A stretch of DNA of 64,000 nt. Origin: Selaginella moellendorffii (Eukaryota > Plantae > Lycopodiophyta). The stretch lies in assembly GCF_000143415.4 (NCBI RefSeq), contig NW_003314273.1, forward strand, positions 1,890,052 to 1,954,051. Direction: 5' to 3'. Shown one piece after another: positions 7,270 through 49,126 of the stretch (position 1 is the first letter of the stretch; each line of letters starts with the position of its first letter). The notes beneath the pieces are model-generated. The model was not told the DNA's origin. It saw only the letters and a list, made by a program, of their open reading frames with translations, and did not search any database. The position numbers were made by a program, and so were the translations under genes.

Positions 7270-9472
7270 AATGTGTGTTAGTCTTGTAACTTATTTCTCA
7301 ACATCAGCCTACAAATAGTGCTCAAGAGTCCGTATATACCACATCCCAAGCCAGAGGGAAAGCCTTAAAAAAGTGGACATGTAATACTGTTTAAATTCTG
7401 TATTGTTTCCATGACATTTTGTGCGTCCCCTCCCACACAGAATGAGCTTTAAGACCATGATGATAAAAGTTATAGTCACAATCCTAATCCCACTTTTGAA
7501 TGAAGACTTACAAACACTAATAACGGGCTTTAGACACTGATGAGCATTACCTTTTCTAGCTATAGAGAAGAAAGCTATTCACCCTGAGCCTCAAAGTAAA
7601 GGAAAGAGAGATCCTCTACCTCATTCTAAAATGAAGCAAGGTGGAAATCATTGAAAAGGACAAGAAACTTGAAACAATTACTGTATTACAATTTTAGTAA
7701 CTCCTTATTTTTAGGTGTGTTTGAATGTCATTCCTGTTTAGTATTATTGAATAATCCATTTGATCAATAATTATAAACATGTTTATCATTTATAAATCAA
7801 AATTAATCTTATTGCATATCAAATTAGGTGGTAAAATAAATATTAATTTGCTGCACATTAATTAATCAAATGAAAATTTATGTCATAAACATGTTTATAA
7901 TTTATAAACACAAGATTAATCTTATTGAATATTAACCATTAAATGGCACCCAGAGGGTGACCCAGCCATGCACGTACGGAATAAACTAGAATATAACTAA
8001 TTCGTGTTTAGTAAAGTTTATAAATTATAAACATGTTTTAAATTTATAAATACAATATTAATCTAAATAAATAACAACCTAGATGGTAAAATATCCTAGA
8101 ATATCTAAGCATATTCTAGGTATATCCACTACCACTTTGCAAAAGAGGAAAGTTATAAATTATAAACATGTTTGGAAATTATAAATACAAGATTAATCTT
8201 GATGAATATTAGAACTAAATATATTTCACTTTTTCTTAGGCAAAGCTTAAATTATTATTAATACAATATTAATCTATTTAAATATTAAATTTAATTAGTA
8301 TATCTAATTATTAGAGGATCAGGTTATGAGACTTCTTGGGATGCAGGGGCAAGAGAAGGGGTGGGGGGGAGCTAGGGCTGGTGGAGGATTGGCTTGGGAA
8401 CAGCACGATGAGCAAAGGCAATCAAGATCTGAGCACAGTGAGGTGTGCCTCTATGCCCATTTAAAACTGGTTTGCTTTAAATATAATTAGATATACTTAT
8501 TAATATTAATATTTAATTAGATTAATCTTGTATTTATAATAATCTATGGTTTTCTTAAGAAAAAGAGAAACATATTTAGTTCTACCAAATAATTTTTATT
8601 CATTTTGATTAATCTTGTATTTTTATAATTTCCAAACATGTTTATAATTTATAACTTTCCTAAACACTTTCTTATTTTTTGTTTGCTTAAGCAAACATGT
8701 AGTGGATATACCTAGAATATGCTTATATATTCTTGTTATTTATATAGATTAATATTTTATTATAATTTATAAACATGTTTATAATTTATAAACTTTCCTA
8801 AAAATTCTAGTTTATTCTACCATTTAATGGTTAATATTCAATAAGATCAATCTTGTGTTTATAAATTATAAAATTTCATTTGATTAATTGGAACTGTTAA
8901 GTAAACCTGCAATGTGCAGTAGTATTTATTTTACCATCTAATTTGATATGCAATAAGAATAATTTTGATTTATAAATGATAAACAAGTTTATAATTATTG
9001 CTAAACAGGAATGACATTCAAACACCAATCTGCCACTCACCTAAAAATAAGGAGTTAGGAAATTGTAATACAGTGATTGTTTCAAGTTTCTTGTCTTTTT
9101 CAATGATCTCCACCTTGCTTCCTCTTTTTCCTTCAAGAGGGCTATCTCTCTGTCCTTCACTTTGAAGCTATCTGTGTGAATAGCTTTCTTCTCTATAGCT
9201 AGAAAAGGTAATGAAGATCAAGCTCATAAAGCCCAGACACTGTTATTAGTGTTTGTAAGTCTTCATTCAAAAGTGGGATTAGGATTGTGACTATGACTTT
9301 TATCATCATGGTCCTAAAGCTCATTCTATGTGAATTTAGACAGTATTAAATGTCCAAACTTTTTGAAGGCTTTCCTTCTGGCTTGGGATGTGAAGGTGGT
9401 TATGTTATATATGGACTCTTGAGCACTATTTGTAGGCTAATGTTAAGAAATAAGTTACAAGACTCACACATT
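7270..9472. mobile_element. AT-rich foldback element: ~1 kb inverted arms (7,270-8,312 and 8,483-9,472) around a ~170 bp purine-rich spacer; non-coding
   Basis: atgtgtgttagtcttgtaacttatttctcaacatcagcctacaaatagtgctcaagagtcc at the left end pairs with ggactcttgagcactatttgtaggctaatgttaagaaataagttacaagactcacacat at the right end; complementarity continues inward. No TSD identified. Confidence 0.75.
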
Positions 9473-10494
9473 TTGTCTTTGCAGTGCTCATTTTAGTTTG
9501 GTTCTGATTGATTGATCACACCAATGAGTTTTTTTTTAAAAATATTTATTTATCAGTTTATGATGGTAGAAACCAAAATGGAAGTAATTCTTATCACTAC
9601 TTGCATTCCAGACTTTGCAACCTAAATCTTTTAGAACAAACTTTTAGGCTAGTACATGCAAGAGTAGAAGAGAAATCAGCTCTTCAAACCACTTGAATCT
9701 TAGTCTTCCACTAGATTGGGCATTTAAGATTCTCCTGGATATAAGATTGTAAAGAAAAATGTGGAATAAACTGATCTTGACTAGGAACTCTTTGTTCGAA
9801 TTTTAAAGCATAATAATCTATTGCTCAAAGGACAGATATGAGTTTTTGAACAAAATTTACAAAGAAACATATAAATGCAACCTTTGTGAATTTTTTTAAA
9901 GATTTAGTTTCAAACTCATGTTATTGATATGTGCATTTTGATTTAAACATTTCTCTTCAATGCTTTGGGAAGAACTTAGATGCTTCCTAGCAGCAGCTAG
10001 TAGCTCATACAGTGCTTTGCCTAATGCATTGTTCGAAAAAATGAAAATACCTCTAATGGACTTTTGTACTGTTGTAAATTCCAATCTAAGCTGTGTTTTT
10101 TTTACAAAATCCCATCCCAACAGTGTTTCTCTTTGACACCTTTGTGTGAGCGCATTTGCCACAGCACCAACAATCGTATGCTCCGTGCATGTTAGCTTTC
10201 AGGTAAAGTCTAAAGCAGAAGGATGACTATAGACGTGAGAAACCTACTTGATCAAGTGTTCTCTTGCACTGAAGTAGTAAGCTCCTCATTATCACTATAG
10301 GAATTTTTTTCAATGATGCTTAACGGGACCTATAATTGAGCATCTATGGTTGGAATAAGTGGATTATGAACTCGACAAGTCATCTATCGCCACAAACGGT
10401 GCATGAAGGTCGCTAGAAACCAGTGGCTATTCAATTTTAAAATGGATCTGGGATTTCGTGGATGTTGTTTTGATTCTTTTGATACCAACAAGCG

Positions 10495-44603: not shown

Positions 44604-45818
44604 ATGTCGTGGTGCACGATTGAATCCGACCCAGGTGAGAATCCCTTGCTACTCAGCTGATGCGATTGAGATCCTTGCCTCGCAGGCGTTTTCACGGAGC
44701 TCATCCAGCAAATGCAAGTCAAGGGCGTCCAGGTAACCTGTTCGTCAAGATCTTCCACTGGATGATCGCGATTTCTATCGAAACCTCTTGCAGGTGGAGG
44801 AGCTCTACAGCTTGGATTTGGAATCGCTCTCGTTGCTCCGGTGAGTGAGAGCTGTTTTAAGCAGGAGAAGAAGAAAATAAAAGGAGTTCTAAGGATGGTT
44901 TTTCCAGGCCTGTCTATGGACTAATCTTTCTCTTCAAATGGAGGCCTGGGGAGAAAGATACTCGGCCCACTGTGAAGGACAACAAATCGATTTTTTTCGC
45001 GAGCCAGGTGAAGTGAAGCTCGATGTTCTAAGTTCTTTCGCTAACTTGGAAAGTTTCACGCAACACAGGTTATAAACAACGCTTGCGCTACTCAAGCAAT
45101 ACTTTCGATCCTGATGAACAGAGTGGAGATCGATATTGGTCCCGAGCTTTCGATGATGCGAGAGTTCGCCAAGGATTTCCCTCCGGAGCTCAAGGGCCTG
45201 ACCATCAACAACAGCGAGGCCATTCGCACTGCTCACAACAGCTTTGCGAGGCCGGAGCCTTTTGTTCCCGACGAGCAAAAGTTTGCGGACAAAGACGACG
45301 ACGTCTATCACTTCATCAGCTATCTCCCGGTGGACGGTGTTTTGTACGAGCTGGACGGACTCAAGGAAGGGCCGATCAGTCTGGGCGAGTGTGGCAGTGG
45401 AGACGCTGATAGCATGGAGTGGCTCAAGATGGTCCAGCCAGTGATCCAAGAGAGGATCGAGAAGTACTCCAAGAGCGAGATCCGCTTCAACCTCATGGCC
45501 GTGATCAAGAACAGGAAGGATCTCTACAACCAGCAGCTGGCGGAGCTCGACAAGCGGAAAACCGAGATAAGTGGCGACGACGGCATGGACGTCGACTCCA
45601 AGAGCGGCAGCGGCAACGAGGAGCTGGCACAGATCGACGCGGAGATCGCTCGACTGACCGAGAAGATCACTCAAGAGGATGAAAAGTTCAAGAAGTGGAA
45701 GACTGAGAACATCCGGAGGAAGCACAACTACATCCCCTTCCTCTTCAACTTCCTCAAGATCCTGGCAGAGAAGAAGCAGCTCAAGCCGCTGATTGAAAAG
45801 GCCAGGCAGAAGACATAG
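44604..45818 (+). CDS. UCH2: Ubiquitin C-terminal hydrolase, UCH37/UCHL5 type
   Basis: [57 protein letters not shown]. Confidence 0.93.
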
Positions 45819-46503: not shown

Positions 46504-46659
46504 TCTTTAAAGTTGTCGGCGCCTCCAAAAGTAAAAAGTTGGGTTTGTCGGCCTTTTTAGGGGCAAGATGTTTAGGGCGGGGATTAACCAAATCTGGAAG
46601 AAATTAAGATTAAGCTGTGTGGTCGTCCGGGGAATCGAACCTCCGCCCACTCCCGCGCG

Positions 46660-48607
46660 ATGGGGCGGACCACTAATGCCAGTGGCACTAGCTCCGGCCG
46701 GAGGCGCGGGCGATCCGAGGAGGAAGAAGCTGGCGCTAGCGGCGCTGGCGGCGACTGGGATCATCCTGCGGCGGCGCTCCATCGCCAGCAATCCATGCTC
46801 GTGGATGGTAAGCGCCGCAGCTTGTCCGTGCCGATTTGCAAGGATTTCGGGCGGGGGCGGTGCTCCAGGCCCGTGCACGAGTGTCGCTATGCTCATCCTC
46901 CTCCCACCGTGGCCGTGGAAGGGTATGCTCTCTCTCGAAATCTCTGGGTGTGGCTCTCAAATCCCTAGTTGCGAGGGTTTTCTCTCAGCGATCAGGTGAC
47001 CATTTGCTACGACTCTCTTCGAGACAGATGCGCTCGTGGGATTTCGTGCCGCTACTTCCATCCGCCGCATCACATTCGCGTGTAAGATCACGATCTTTGT
47101 CCTCTCTCTCTCTTGCATTTGAGACGCCTAGCCTACGATCTCCTTGTTCTTCATCAGTGCCACACAAGAAGCCGTCGGCATTGATCCATCGCCGCTGGGG
47201 CTCGAGGTACGTGATGGATTTCTCGAAACATCGTCCATAAGCGCTAACGATTGATTCCTCTTCGAATTCTCCCAGCTGCGAGCATCCAATTTGCTGCTTG
47301 GTCCTTCCCCGACATCTCTTATCACGATCTCGAGGCCTTCGATCGAGGTGCTTCCTCCATGGTTTCTTTATATTCCTTTTTCCATGGATTTCTCCATCAT
47401 GGTTTATCGAAACTTTGGCATTTCTTTGTCAGGTTTGTAGGGACTTTGTTCGTGGGCGATGCAAGCGTGAATCGGACGAATGTCGTTTCGCTCATCACGT
47501 CCCAGCAGCCGGAGATGGCGATTATGCTATAGTGTGTGTCCGTCTTTTGCTTCCTCCAGCGATCACTCAAACCCGCTCGTTCTTACAGGTCTGCCAGGAT
47601 TTTATGCGCGGAAGATGCGAACGAGAGACTTGCCGCTACTTCCATCCCCCGGATCATCTAAGATCTCGTGTGAAAGATGTAAGTACAGACGTCCGTACAG
47701 ATTTTCTTTGTTCATCCGTAGTTTTTTTTGTTCTTTCTTGCTAGATTGGAGGTGTTCCTGCTGCCGTGTCAAATCCTCCTCGATACGATTTACCAGGTGT
47801 CTACTGTTCTTATCCAGGATACGAGAACCAGGTAAAGTCGTACTCTACGTGATTAGCTTTCGCAAACTCTTACTGTCAGGCGAAGCGAATGAGGCTGGAT
47901 GAAGTGCTTCTCGACAAGAGCTCAAACCTTGTAAGAAGACTGTTCTTAATTGTTTTCGGGAAGGTTTTCACGAATTTTTTCCAGCTTCTGGAAGCCGCTG
48001 GCCAATCTCTCCCTGTGTTTAGACCGTGCTCACCTCCACGGAATGGTACAATGACCGAGCTCCTTCTTGCCATCACCCGTGAGTGAGAATGTTTTACAGA
48101 TCAAGACAGGCTCCCGGCGTGCCGAGATTTCTTGCGTAACAAATGTGCCAGAAGCTCGTCCTGTCGATTCGTCCACCCAGCTCCCTACACGCAGGTAGTC
48201 AACTTCGGAGCAAGAGTGCGTACTAGAGTACTGATTTGTGGAACTCGCAGGTGGTCGACGGCTATGTAACTCTCTGCCGTGATTCTCTCCGAGGCAAATG
48301 TTTAAGGGAAGCATGCCGCTTCCACCATCCGACGCAATCGGCTTTCCAGCAACGCGATAACTTCGAGAGCTCCAACACGGATAACTTCTATGGGAGCCGA
48401 GCGGCAGTAGTAGCAGCTCCGGACTCGTTTGGAAGCCTCTCTCCAAACGAAGACGATGACAATCCAGGCGATCAAGGTACTCCGAATCACCACAGGCTAC
48501 AACACTCTCCCGCTCCTCCTCTTGATCATCTTCCTCCTCCCCCTCCTCCACCTCTTCCTTCACCTCACCTCCTCCAACAGCTTCTCCATCTTCTAGTCCT
48601 GCAATAG
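46660..48607 (+). CDS. Muscleblind-like RNA-binding protein with three tandem CCCH finger pairs
   Basis: Spliced fingers CKDFGRGRCSRPVHECRYAH, CYDSLRDRCARGISCRYFH, CRDFVRGRCKRESDECRFAH, CQDFMRGRCERETCRYFH, CRDFLRNKCARSSSCRFVH, CRDSLRGKCLREACRFHH. 3' end approximate. Confidence 0.85.
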
Positions 48608-49126
48608 AGAGAAGCAATTTGGCAGAGGCAATGTCATGGCATATATATAATCTTTCTCTCGAATCGTGCCACAGTTGGAGATGACTAGAGCTGCCGGACT
48701 GCTCCTGCTCGCTTCCTTTCGGTCAGATGCAAAAAATGCCACTGACTCTACCGCGCTGCGCTAGGTACCCTCCTCCTTTTTGTAGCTACTAGAACCTCTT
48801 CAATTCTAAGATATTCCAGCAGATACTGTAAGTTTGCAAGGTCATCTCTTTACGAAGCTCAACCTCACGCAAGCAGAGACGATGTTGTTGTATATGCGGC
48901 GAGCCAGGAGCTTGGCCATGAAAGATGTTTCACTCTGTTCTTGAGAAGGTCGAGTCCTCCATCCGAATTGCCGTGTCTATAGCATGAGCACAACAATTAT
49001 AGTCCCCGCTCCAAAATAGGTGCCTTGAAACAACTTGATAAACAGACTAGAAAATACCTGCATTGATCTAGGGACCCCTTATTTTTGCTTCTTGTCCTTA
49101 AAAGAACAATATTGGCTATTTGTGTC

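Follow-up and report, generated by a model that had tools for sequence, protein, structure and literature searches.

Does a land plant possess a Muscleblind protein? The question is raised by a gene of the lycophyte Selaginella moellendorffii located on the forward strand at positions 46660..48688 of a 64,000-nucleotide stretch of contig NW_003314273.1 (positions 1,890,052 to 1,954,051; hereafter, the window). The Muscleblind/MBNL proteins are among the best-studied splicing regulators, and their sequestration causes myotonic dystrophy. Published papers and a 2025 review hold that plants, fungi and bacteria have nothing Muscleblind-like, and they date the origin of the family to early animals. 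A sequence-only reading of the window had nevertheless proposed an MBNL-type protein at this locus, with the remark that the family is described as animal restricted, which is indeed what the literature says. Our analyses make it highly probable that the gene encodes three MBNL-type pairs of CCCH zinc fingers (ZnFs), that its product is a homolog and probable ortholog of Muscleblind, and that its family spans the streptophytes, with OsC3H28 of rice among the members and with putative functions in RNA binding and mRNA regulation.

The six CCCH fingers of the protein form three tight pairs, with 14, 13 and 14 residues between the two fingers of pairs 1, 2 and 3, respectively, and the pairs are joined by low-complexity linkers. 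Pair 1 (46837..47061, on the forward strand like all other features of the gene) is composed of ZnF1 (residues 60-79, C-x7-C-x6-C-x3-H; 46837-46896) and ZnF2 (residues 94-112, x7-x5-x3; 47005-47061), and intron 1 (46923-46988) falls within its inter-finger linker. Pair 2 (47436..47645) contains ZnF3 (residues 161-180, x7-x6-x3; 47436-47495) and ZnF4 (residues 194-211, x7-x4-x3; 47592-47645), split by a 57-nucleotide intron (47532-47588). Pair 3 (48120..48328) contains ZnF5 (residues 296-314, x7-x5-x3; 48120-48176) and ZnF6 (residues 329-346, x7-x4-x3; 48275-48328), split by a 56-nucleotide intron (48195-48250). The animal Muscleblinds, including MBNL1-3, Mbl of Drosophila and MBL-1 of C. elegans, have the same tandem of C-x7-C-x6-C-x3-H followed by C-x7-C-x4-C-x3-H, with linkers of 13-16 residues. 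With rat MBNL3 and coral Mbl scored alike, four of the six Selaginella fingers (ZnF1, ZnF3, ZnF4 and ZnF6) showed the exact MBNL spacing.

The similarity extends to the surroundings of the fingers and to the residues expected to contact RNA. The linkers VAVEGDQVTICYDSLR and VVDGYVTLCRDSLRG each span a splice junction, which shows that the gene had been correctly spliced by eye in the sequence-only reading, and both junctions were seen in spliced contigs of the four sequencing runs, from four studies, described below. The tails HPPHHIR and HPPDHLR are present, a DRL lead-in precedes ZnF5, and an IEV/LEV lead-in is kept solely before ZnF3; likewise, animal Muscleblinds have HPPxHL tails after their even-numbered fingers and LEV/IEV or DRL lead-ins. 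The fingers, pairs, spacings, linkers, tails and DRL lead-in listed in the sequence-only reading were thus all found. In each of the six fingers, the residue located two positions after the third Cys is aromatic (Y, Y, F, Y, F and F). In MBNL1, the same position is occupied by Phe202 and Tyr236, two residues that intercalate into bound RNA at its GC step (PMC9780971). Arg residues are found at C3+1 and C2+2 in all six fingers as well. The intercalating aromatic residue, the conserved Arg residues and the predicted two-finger fold are the same in animal Muscleblinds.

The spacings also set the protein apart from other tandem CCCH proteins. In TTP/TIS11 proteins, the fingers are of the C-x8-C-x5-C-x3-H type, separated by an 18-residue linker. 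The plant RR-TZF proteins were defined by Wang et al. 2008 as having C-x7-8-C-x5-C-x3-H followed by C-x5-C-x4-C-x3-H, with an arginine-rich lead region. Both groups are tandem CCCH RNA binders too, but none of the three Selaginella pairs follows the RR-TZF/TTP-type pattern, in line with the earlier statement that the spacings of plant tandem zinc finger proteins differ.

We performed sequence searches exon by exon; for pair 2, the query consisted of 82 residues obtained by reading through the stop-free 57-nucleotide intron. In a phmmer search of PDB, pair 2 alone matched six MBNL1/2 entries with E values between 8.6e-16 and 2.6e-12, the best match being ZnF3/4 of MBNL1 (8.6e-16), and the next family, CPSF30, followed at 0.15. 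The ZnF2 exon alone yielded significant PDB matches solely with MBNL chains (TTP had an E value of 0.13), and the same MBNL-first pattern was obtained with the ZnF6 exon. Pfam zf-CCCH_10 matched the exons of pair 1 at 2.2e-08 and 1e-13, and it matched the full-length protein at 6.6e-63 in six stretches. It was also the top Pfam family, again with six stretches, for the rice and coral proteins, and the top family for rat MBNL3. Pfam and PDB matches were obtained for pair 3 as well, and chance cannot account for matches as strong as that of the full-length protein in Pfam or those of pair 2 with MBNL chains.

Larger collections gave the same picture. A HMMER search of 1.84 billion representative sequences with the pair 2 query returned 289 proteins below 1e-10, in which six-finger proteins of 350-450 residues ranked best, followed by four-finger proteins. 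Cluster look-ups, which named the taxa for a minority of the 150 representatives listed, indicated that the first group is made of streptophyte proteins and the rest of animal Muscleblinds. A word search with the full-length protein retrieved plant orthologs and then muscleblind-like proteins of corals, spiders, fishes, mammals and birds or uncharacterized animal proteins, with no other CCCH family among the named matches. The nearest ESM Atlas clusters were all muscleblind. Using BLASTP, residues 53-347 of the Selaginella protein were aligned with residues 44-396 of the Stylophora Muscleblind in one collinear alignment that includes all three pairs (34% identity, E value of 2e-52). Identity between kingdoms amounts to 40-50% in the finger domains, and no conservation between plants and animals was detected outside the fingers in the BLASTP alignment. 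The order of the three pairs is collinear with that of coral, sponge, tunicate, mollusc and fly Muscleblind isoforms. We conclude that the protein is a true homolog of animal Muscleblind, and probably its ortholog.

Structure predictions, which cover pairs 2 and 3, were consistent with the sequence searches. The AlphaFold2 model of pair 2 has a pLDDT (predicted local distance difference test) score of 89, and it was superposed by Foldseek on 3d2q_A with template modeling (TM) scores of 0.75/0.80 and a root mean square deviation (rmsd) of 1.8. The model of pair 3 (pLDDT of 80) matched 3d2q_B with TM scores of 0.74/0.77 and 3d2n with a TM score of 0.80. For both pairs, the ten best Foldseek matches in PDB were all MBNL1/2 tandem domains, with TM scores of 0.59-0.80 and rmsd values of 1.4-1.8 relative to the crystal structures, and the first non-MBNL match was CPSF30, with a TM score of ~0.35. 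The compact tandem-finger fold of MBNL is thus predicted for pairs 2 and 3. CPSF30/Yth1, the next-best CCCH family, likewise has serial CCCH fingers that bind single-stranded RNA, but its sequence match is at chance level (E values of 0.15-0.4) and its fold does not superpose (rmsd of 8-12). TTP and TIS11d matched solely at E > 0.1 or TM < 0.3. The proposal of an MBNL-type protein is therefore upheld by the sequence and the predicted fold, as well as by the residues that would contact RNA and the collinear order of the three pairs.

We then looked at how widely the family is distributed. Named members are present in streptophyte algae (Mesostigma, Klebsormidium and Closterium), liverworts (Marchantia, Riccia and Calypogeia), lycophytes (Selaginella and Diphasiastrum), ferns (Ceratopteris and Pteridium), the conifer Cryptomeria, the magnoliid Magnolia and many monocots (rice, with OsC3H28, maize, oil palm, pineapple, asparagus, iris, orchids and several grasses). 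The sequence-only reading, which had described the gene as that of a non-seed plant, was thus too narrow in scope, since Cryptomeria, Magnolia and numerous monocots have orthologs. Rice OsC3H28 (LOC_Os04g35800) is a member of the same family, as are the "zinc finger CCCH domain-containing protein 28" proteins of Magnolia and the monocots. They have three MBNL-type pairs, and the RefSeq name of the Selaginella protein derives from OsC3H28. The angiosperm proteins of this group are shorter, with about 275-350 amino acids, and in all angiosperm members the linker of pair 2 is shortened to 10 residues. Additional finger pairs, produced by lineage-specific duplication, are seen in members from Iris, Asparagus and Dendrobium.

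When all 297 candidates were scored with the Magnolia protein as the query, the results included neither a eudicot nor a moss. Because eudicots dominate public plant proteomes and yet returned none, there is reasonable, though not conclusive, evidence that the eudicot and moss lineages lost the gene or that it diverged strongly in them. Beyond plants and animals, a 582-amino-acid protein of the euglenid Eutreptiella gymnastica has three MBNL-type pairs, which group together in the tree described below. It could be the sign of a wider eukaryotic range or the product of a gene from the green-algal plastid donor.

The third pair had been regarded in the sequence-only reading as an extra pair of the plant protein. 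This view did not hold, as Muscleblinds with six fingers in three pairs are common among animals: we found them in the sponge Sycon, in three corals (Stylophora, Pocillopora and Porites), in a tick and a hemichordate, in the tunicates Ciona and Styela, in an oyster and a snail, and as an mbl isoform of the fly. In a hagfish protein, the third pair is reduced to one of its two fingers, and it is missing from the mammalian MBNLs in the match lists. Human MBNL1-3 have lost it. Our literature search found no paper that deals with such a pair in animals.

A tree of 114 finger pairs was built from an alignment of 67 columns. With all rows included, the plant and animal third pairs formed one clade (96/73), whose support rose to 100/98 under a site-mixture model after the removal of long-branch rows. 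The first pairs of plants (99/99) and those of animals (100/99) were strongly supported as separate clades. The animal third pairs formed a clade as well (97/89), and those of plants were weakly placed on one side of the branch (41/0). The plant second pairs did not form a single clade, as the first tree placed that of Mesostigma with the second pairs of animals. The plant pairs were not nested inside animal clades, which does not favor the alternative, considered in the sequence-only reading, that plants acquired the gene rather than retained it. The pair-by-pair orthology of pairs 1 and 2 was not recovered in the free tree, and the approximately unbiased (AU) test did not reject it (p = 0.38 and 0.55). 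Positive support for the orthology of pairs across kingdoms is therefore limited to the third-pair clade.

Intron positions associated with the finger pairs were compared as well. The intron before ZnF3 (47348-47432, phase 0, ...IE|VC...) lies at the same place and in the same phase as an intron of the mbl gene of Stylophora pistillata. As the site is a GAG|GT proto-splice site, this intron might have been gained in parallel, and we take the single shared site as suggestive at most.

The gene is expressed and spliced as modeled. Its coding span (46660..48688) starts with the ATG at 46660 and comprises 12 exons, located at 46660-46922, 46989-47081, 47158-47206, 47276-47347, 47433-47531, 47589-47678, 47745-47831, 47880-47930, 47985-48045, 48100-48194, 48251-48476 and 48675-48688, all supported by a consistent frame and by spliced joints. 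Ten introns had been predicted from the sequence; they are 48-85 nucleotides long, all have GT..AG borders and they keep the frame consistent throughout. We checked the joints in four public RNA-type runs from four studies, which contain roughly half of the words sampled from the stretch. All ten predicted joints were present in spliced contigs, each intron in three to four runs, showing that the exons are joined in transcripts. An eleventh, unpredicted joint at 48476|48675, which removes 198 nucleotides with GT..AG borders, was found in all four runs. The translation of the 12 exons is identical to EFJ29436.1/XP_024529961.1, the "zinc finger CCCH domain-containing protein 28" of Selaginella moellendorffii (399 amino acids).

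The last intron (48477..48674) is alternatively retained. Its spliced joint was found in the four runs, and unspliced contigs (48452-48702) were present in the same runs, showing that the two forms co-occur. Removal of this intron yields the 399-amino-acid protein, with the C terminus ...GDQVGDD and the stop codon at 48686-48688, which is the form used by the database protein. When it is kept, the protein has 438 amino acids and a proline-rich tail, with the stop codon at 48605-48607. The end proposed earlier for the gene, 48607, therefore holds for the intron-retaining isoform but not for the database protein.

Two other exon borders were considered and dropped. One joined the donor of exon 2 (47079|47080) straight to 47433; the exons at 47158-47206 and 47276-47347 give a consistent frame, and the RNA joints agree with them. 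The other placed the donor of exon 9 at 48078, which would leave a 21-nucleotide intron, and RNA supports the donor at 48045.

The gene sits on a 2.9-Mb Selaginella scaffold, and a second copy, 97% identical, is present on another scaffold and probably represents the second haplotype. A variant joint in one run (X1) carries the three-residue insertion of the second copy. RefSeq names an isoform of this copy "muscleblind-like protein 3 isoform X2."

A number of observations weigh against a conserved three-pair Muscleblind, be it on its architecture, origin or function. The spacing is x5 in ZnF2 and ZnF5, where MBNL has x4 or x6. Unlike in animal Muscleblinds, the RD/KWL "LEV box" and the KxQL/NGR motif are absent around plant pair 1, which is preceded by SLSVPIC and followed by HIRVATQEAVGI, and the linkers are unrelated in sequence. 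Oddo et al. described these flanking motifs of MBNL1 as merely possibly present in distant animal homologs. The AlphaFold models are not independent of MBNL, since the alignments supplied to AlphaFold included animal sequences and its training set probably contained MBNL structures. The introns of pairs 1 and 3 are at different places from those of Stylophora, so that two of the three differ. No binding or splicing data for any plant member were found in the literature. Lastly, a tree grouping all plant pairs together was not rejected by the AU test (p = 0.28), and an independent triplication of the finger pair in plants is thus not rejected either. Because of that test, the pair-by-pair orthology between plants and animals is likely but unproven. 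The three-pair ancestor, to which the third-pair clade points, is the better-supported reading rather than a settled one.

Other origins can be envisaged for the resemblance. If an ancient horizontal transfer had occurred between an early animal and an early streptophyte lineage, or through a third party, the protein would belong to the same family without vertical descent from a common eukaryotic ancestor. The patchy distribution that we observed, with animals, streptophytes from Mesostigma upward and one euglenid, would fit such an event, as would the level of identity of the finger domains across kingdoms and the lack of any fungus, chlorophyte or other protist among the matches that could be named. 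Nevertheless, this absence rests on the minority of the 150 listed representatives that have names, the introns are short and of plant type, and the gene tree roughly follows the species tree (zygnematophytes, liverworts, ferns and monocots), with plant first pairs, animal first pairs and animal third pairs as supported clades. We therefore regard a transfer as unlikely. Convergence of a plant-specific CCCH family toward MBNL is far less probable. CCCH fingers are short and constrained, and Pfam files those of this protein under a general family named after ZAP, which could make a chance resemblance conceivable. However, some 14 orders of magnitude in E value separate MBNL from the next family, the two-finger fold matches MBNL alone, the three-pair alignment is collinear, a single clade unites the third pairs and an intron position is common to the plant and coral genes. 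As for contamination or an assembly artifact of animal origin, we found nothing in its favor, and it is hardly credible for a gene that adjoins a UCH-type deubiquitinase gene on a 2.9-Mb Selaginella scaffold, has introns of 48-85 nucleotides and a 97%-identical haplotype copy on another scaffold, is represented in RNA from four studies and has orthologs across streptophytes.

What might the protein do? By comparison with MBNL1, each pair would bind GC-containing (YGCY-like) motifs in single-stranded RNA through two pockets located on opposite faces. Since its three two-faced pairs are carried on flexible linkers, the protein might read clustered motifs, and it could loop the RNA. We consider RNA binding of the MBNL type to be quite likely. 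A small exon between pairs 2 and 3 (47880..47930) encodes a basic KRMR motif (...QAKRMRLDE...) that is conserved among streptophyte members between these two pairs, with the consensus YxxQxxKRxRxx in an alignment of 21 sequences. A KRP/KRH motif is found at a similar place in animal proteins, and KRPALE acts in nuclear import in human MBNL1. KRMR is a candidate nuclear localization signal. With this motif as a likely import signal, the protein may be nuclear and may regulate the alternative splicing of pre-mRNAs or another mRNA step.

A role in splicing, proposed by analogy with animal MBNL, seems plausible, with slightly less than even chances. We are a little more tentative about the full scenario, in which a three-pair Muscleblind predates the plant/animal split, was kept in streptophytes and lost in eudicots and mosses, and exerts YGCY-dependent splicing control in plants. 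More doubtful, but still to be reckoned with, is the possibility that the protein belongs to this family and binds RNA but acts mainly on mRNA stability, localization, translation or polyadenylation. Animal Muscleblinds also control alternative polyadenylation, stability and localization, according to one publication (PMC5041496), and the regions outside the fingers, which contribute to splicing activity in animals, are not conserved between plants and animals. Conversely, remote animal homologs remain able to regulate splicing in mouse cells despite poor conservation beyond their fingers (Oddo et al.), and the conserved KRMR motif suggests nuclear import, although both arguments are indirect.

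Part of the link between plants and Muscleblind is already present in databases. In addition to the RefSeq name of the second Selaginella copy, the NCBI record of the Marchantia ortholog is named "muscleblind." In the literature that we searched, no paper deals with plant Muscleblind homologs or connects the rice and monocot group with Muscleblind. OsC3H28 figures in the list of Wang et al. 2008 as a protein with six CCCH motifs, with no mention of Muscleblind, and later rice papers merely list the locus. One review on plant circular RNAs (circRNAs) cites Lai et al. 2018 for muscleblind "homologs" of Arabidopsis. As no eudicot member was found in our searches, these are probably generic CCCH proteins. 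The link thus exists in databases but not in the searchable literature, and the novelty, which lies in plant members of a known family, is moderate. The gain is limited because some genes already bear the label "muscleblind" in databases and their function is inferred only.

The presence of orthologs across the green lineage, in organisms ranging from a basal streptophyte alga to rice, nevertheless changes the account of the origin of the family, and it suggests that the ancestral protein had three finger pairs rather than two. Its apparent absence from eudicots, including Arabidopsis, and from mosses, which are the main plant models, would explain why the gene was overlooked in plants. Marchantia, rice and maize offer genetically tractable plant systems to study the family, whose members are candidate sequence-specific splicing or circRNA factors for plants, where such factors are poorly known.

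Additional observations were made on the transcripts and surroundings of the gene. Unspliced contigs span introns 2, 6, 9 and 1 (47052-47187, 47649-47754, 48024-48128 and 46663-47081, respectively) in the same runs as the spliced joints, and they could reflect intron retention, pre-mRNA or some DNA. Keeping intron 1 would introduce a stop codon. Downstream of the stop codon of the gene, we detected GT..AG joints at 48762|48821 and, as a variant, at 48764|48825, as well as a loose contig end at 48931, with a continuation of 255 letters elsewhere. The 3' untranslated region thus seems to contain introns, a feature that can mark transcripts for nonsense-mediated decay.

Immediately upstream of the gene, an open reading frame on the forward strand (45114-45818) corresponds to the C-terminal half of a UCH37/UCH-L5-type deubiquitinase (Peptidase_C12, 2.6e-28; UCH_C, 2.9e-20), and a contig of ~1.4 kb from the transcript of this UCH-type deubiquitinase ends near 46523. 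Elsewhere in the window, the blocks 8001-10000, 54001-56000, 58001-60000 and 62001-64000 are AT rich, with a GC content of 0.28-0.34 compared with ~50% in the rest of the window.

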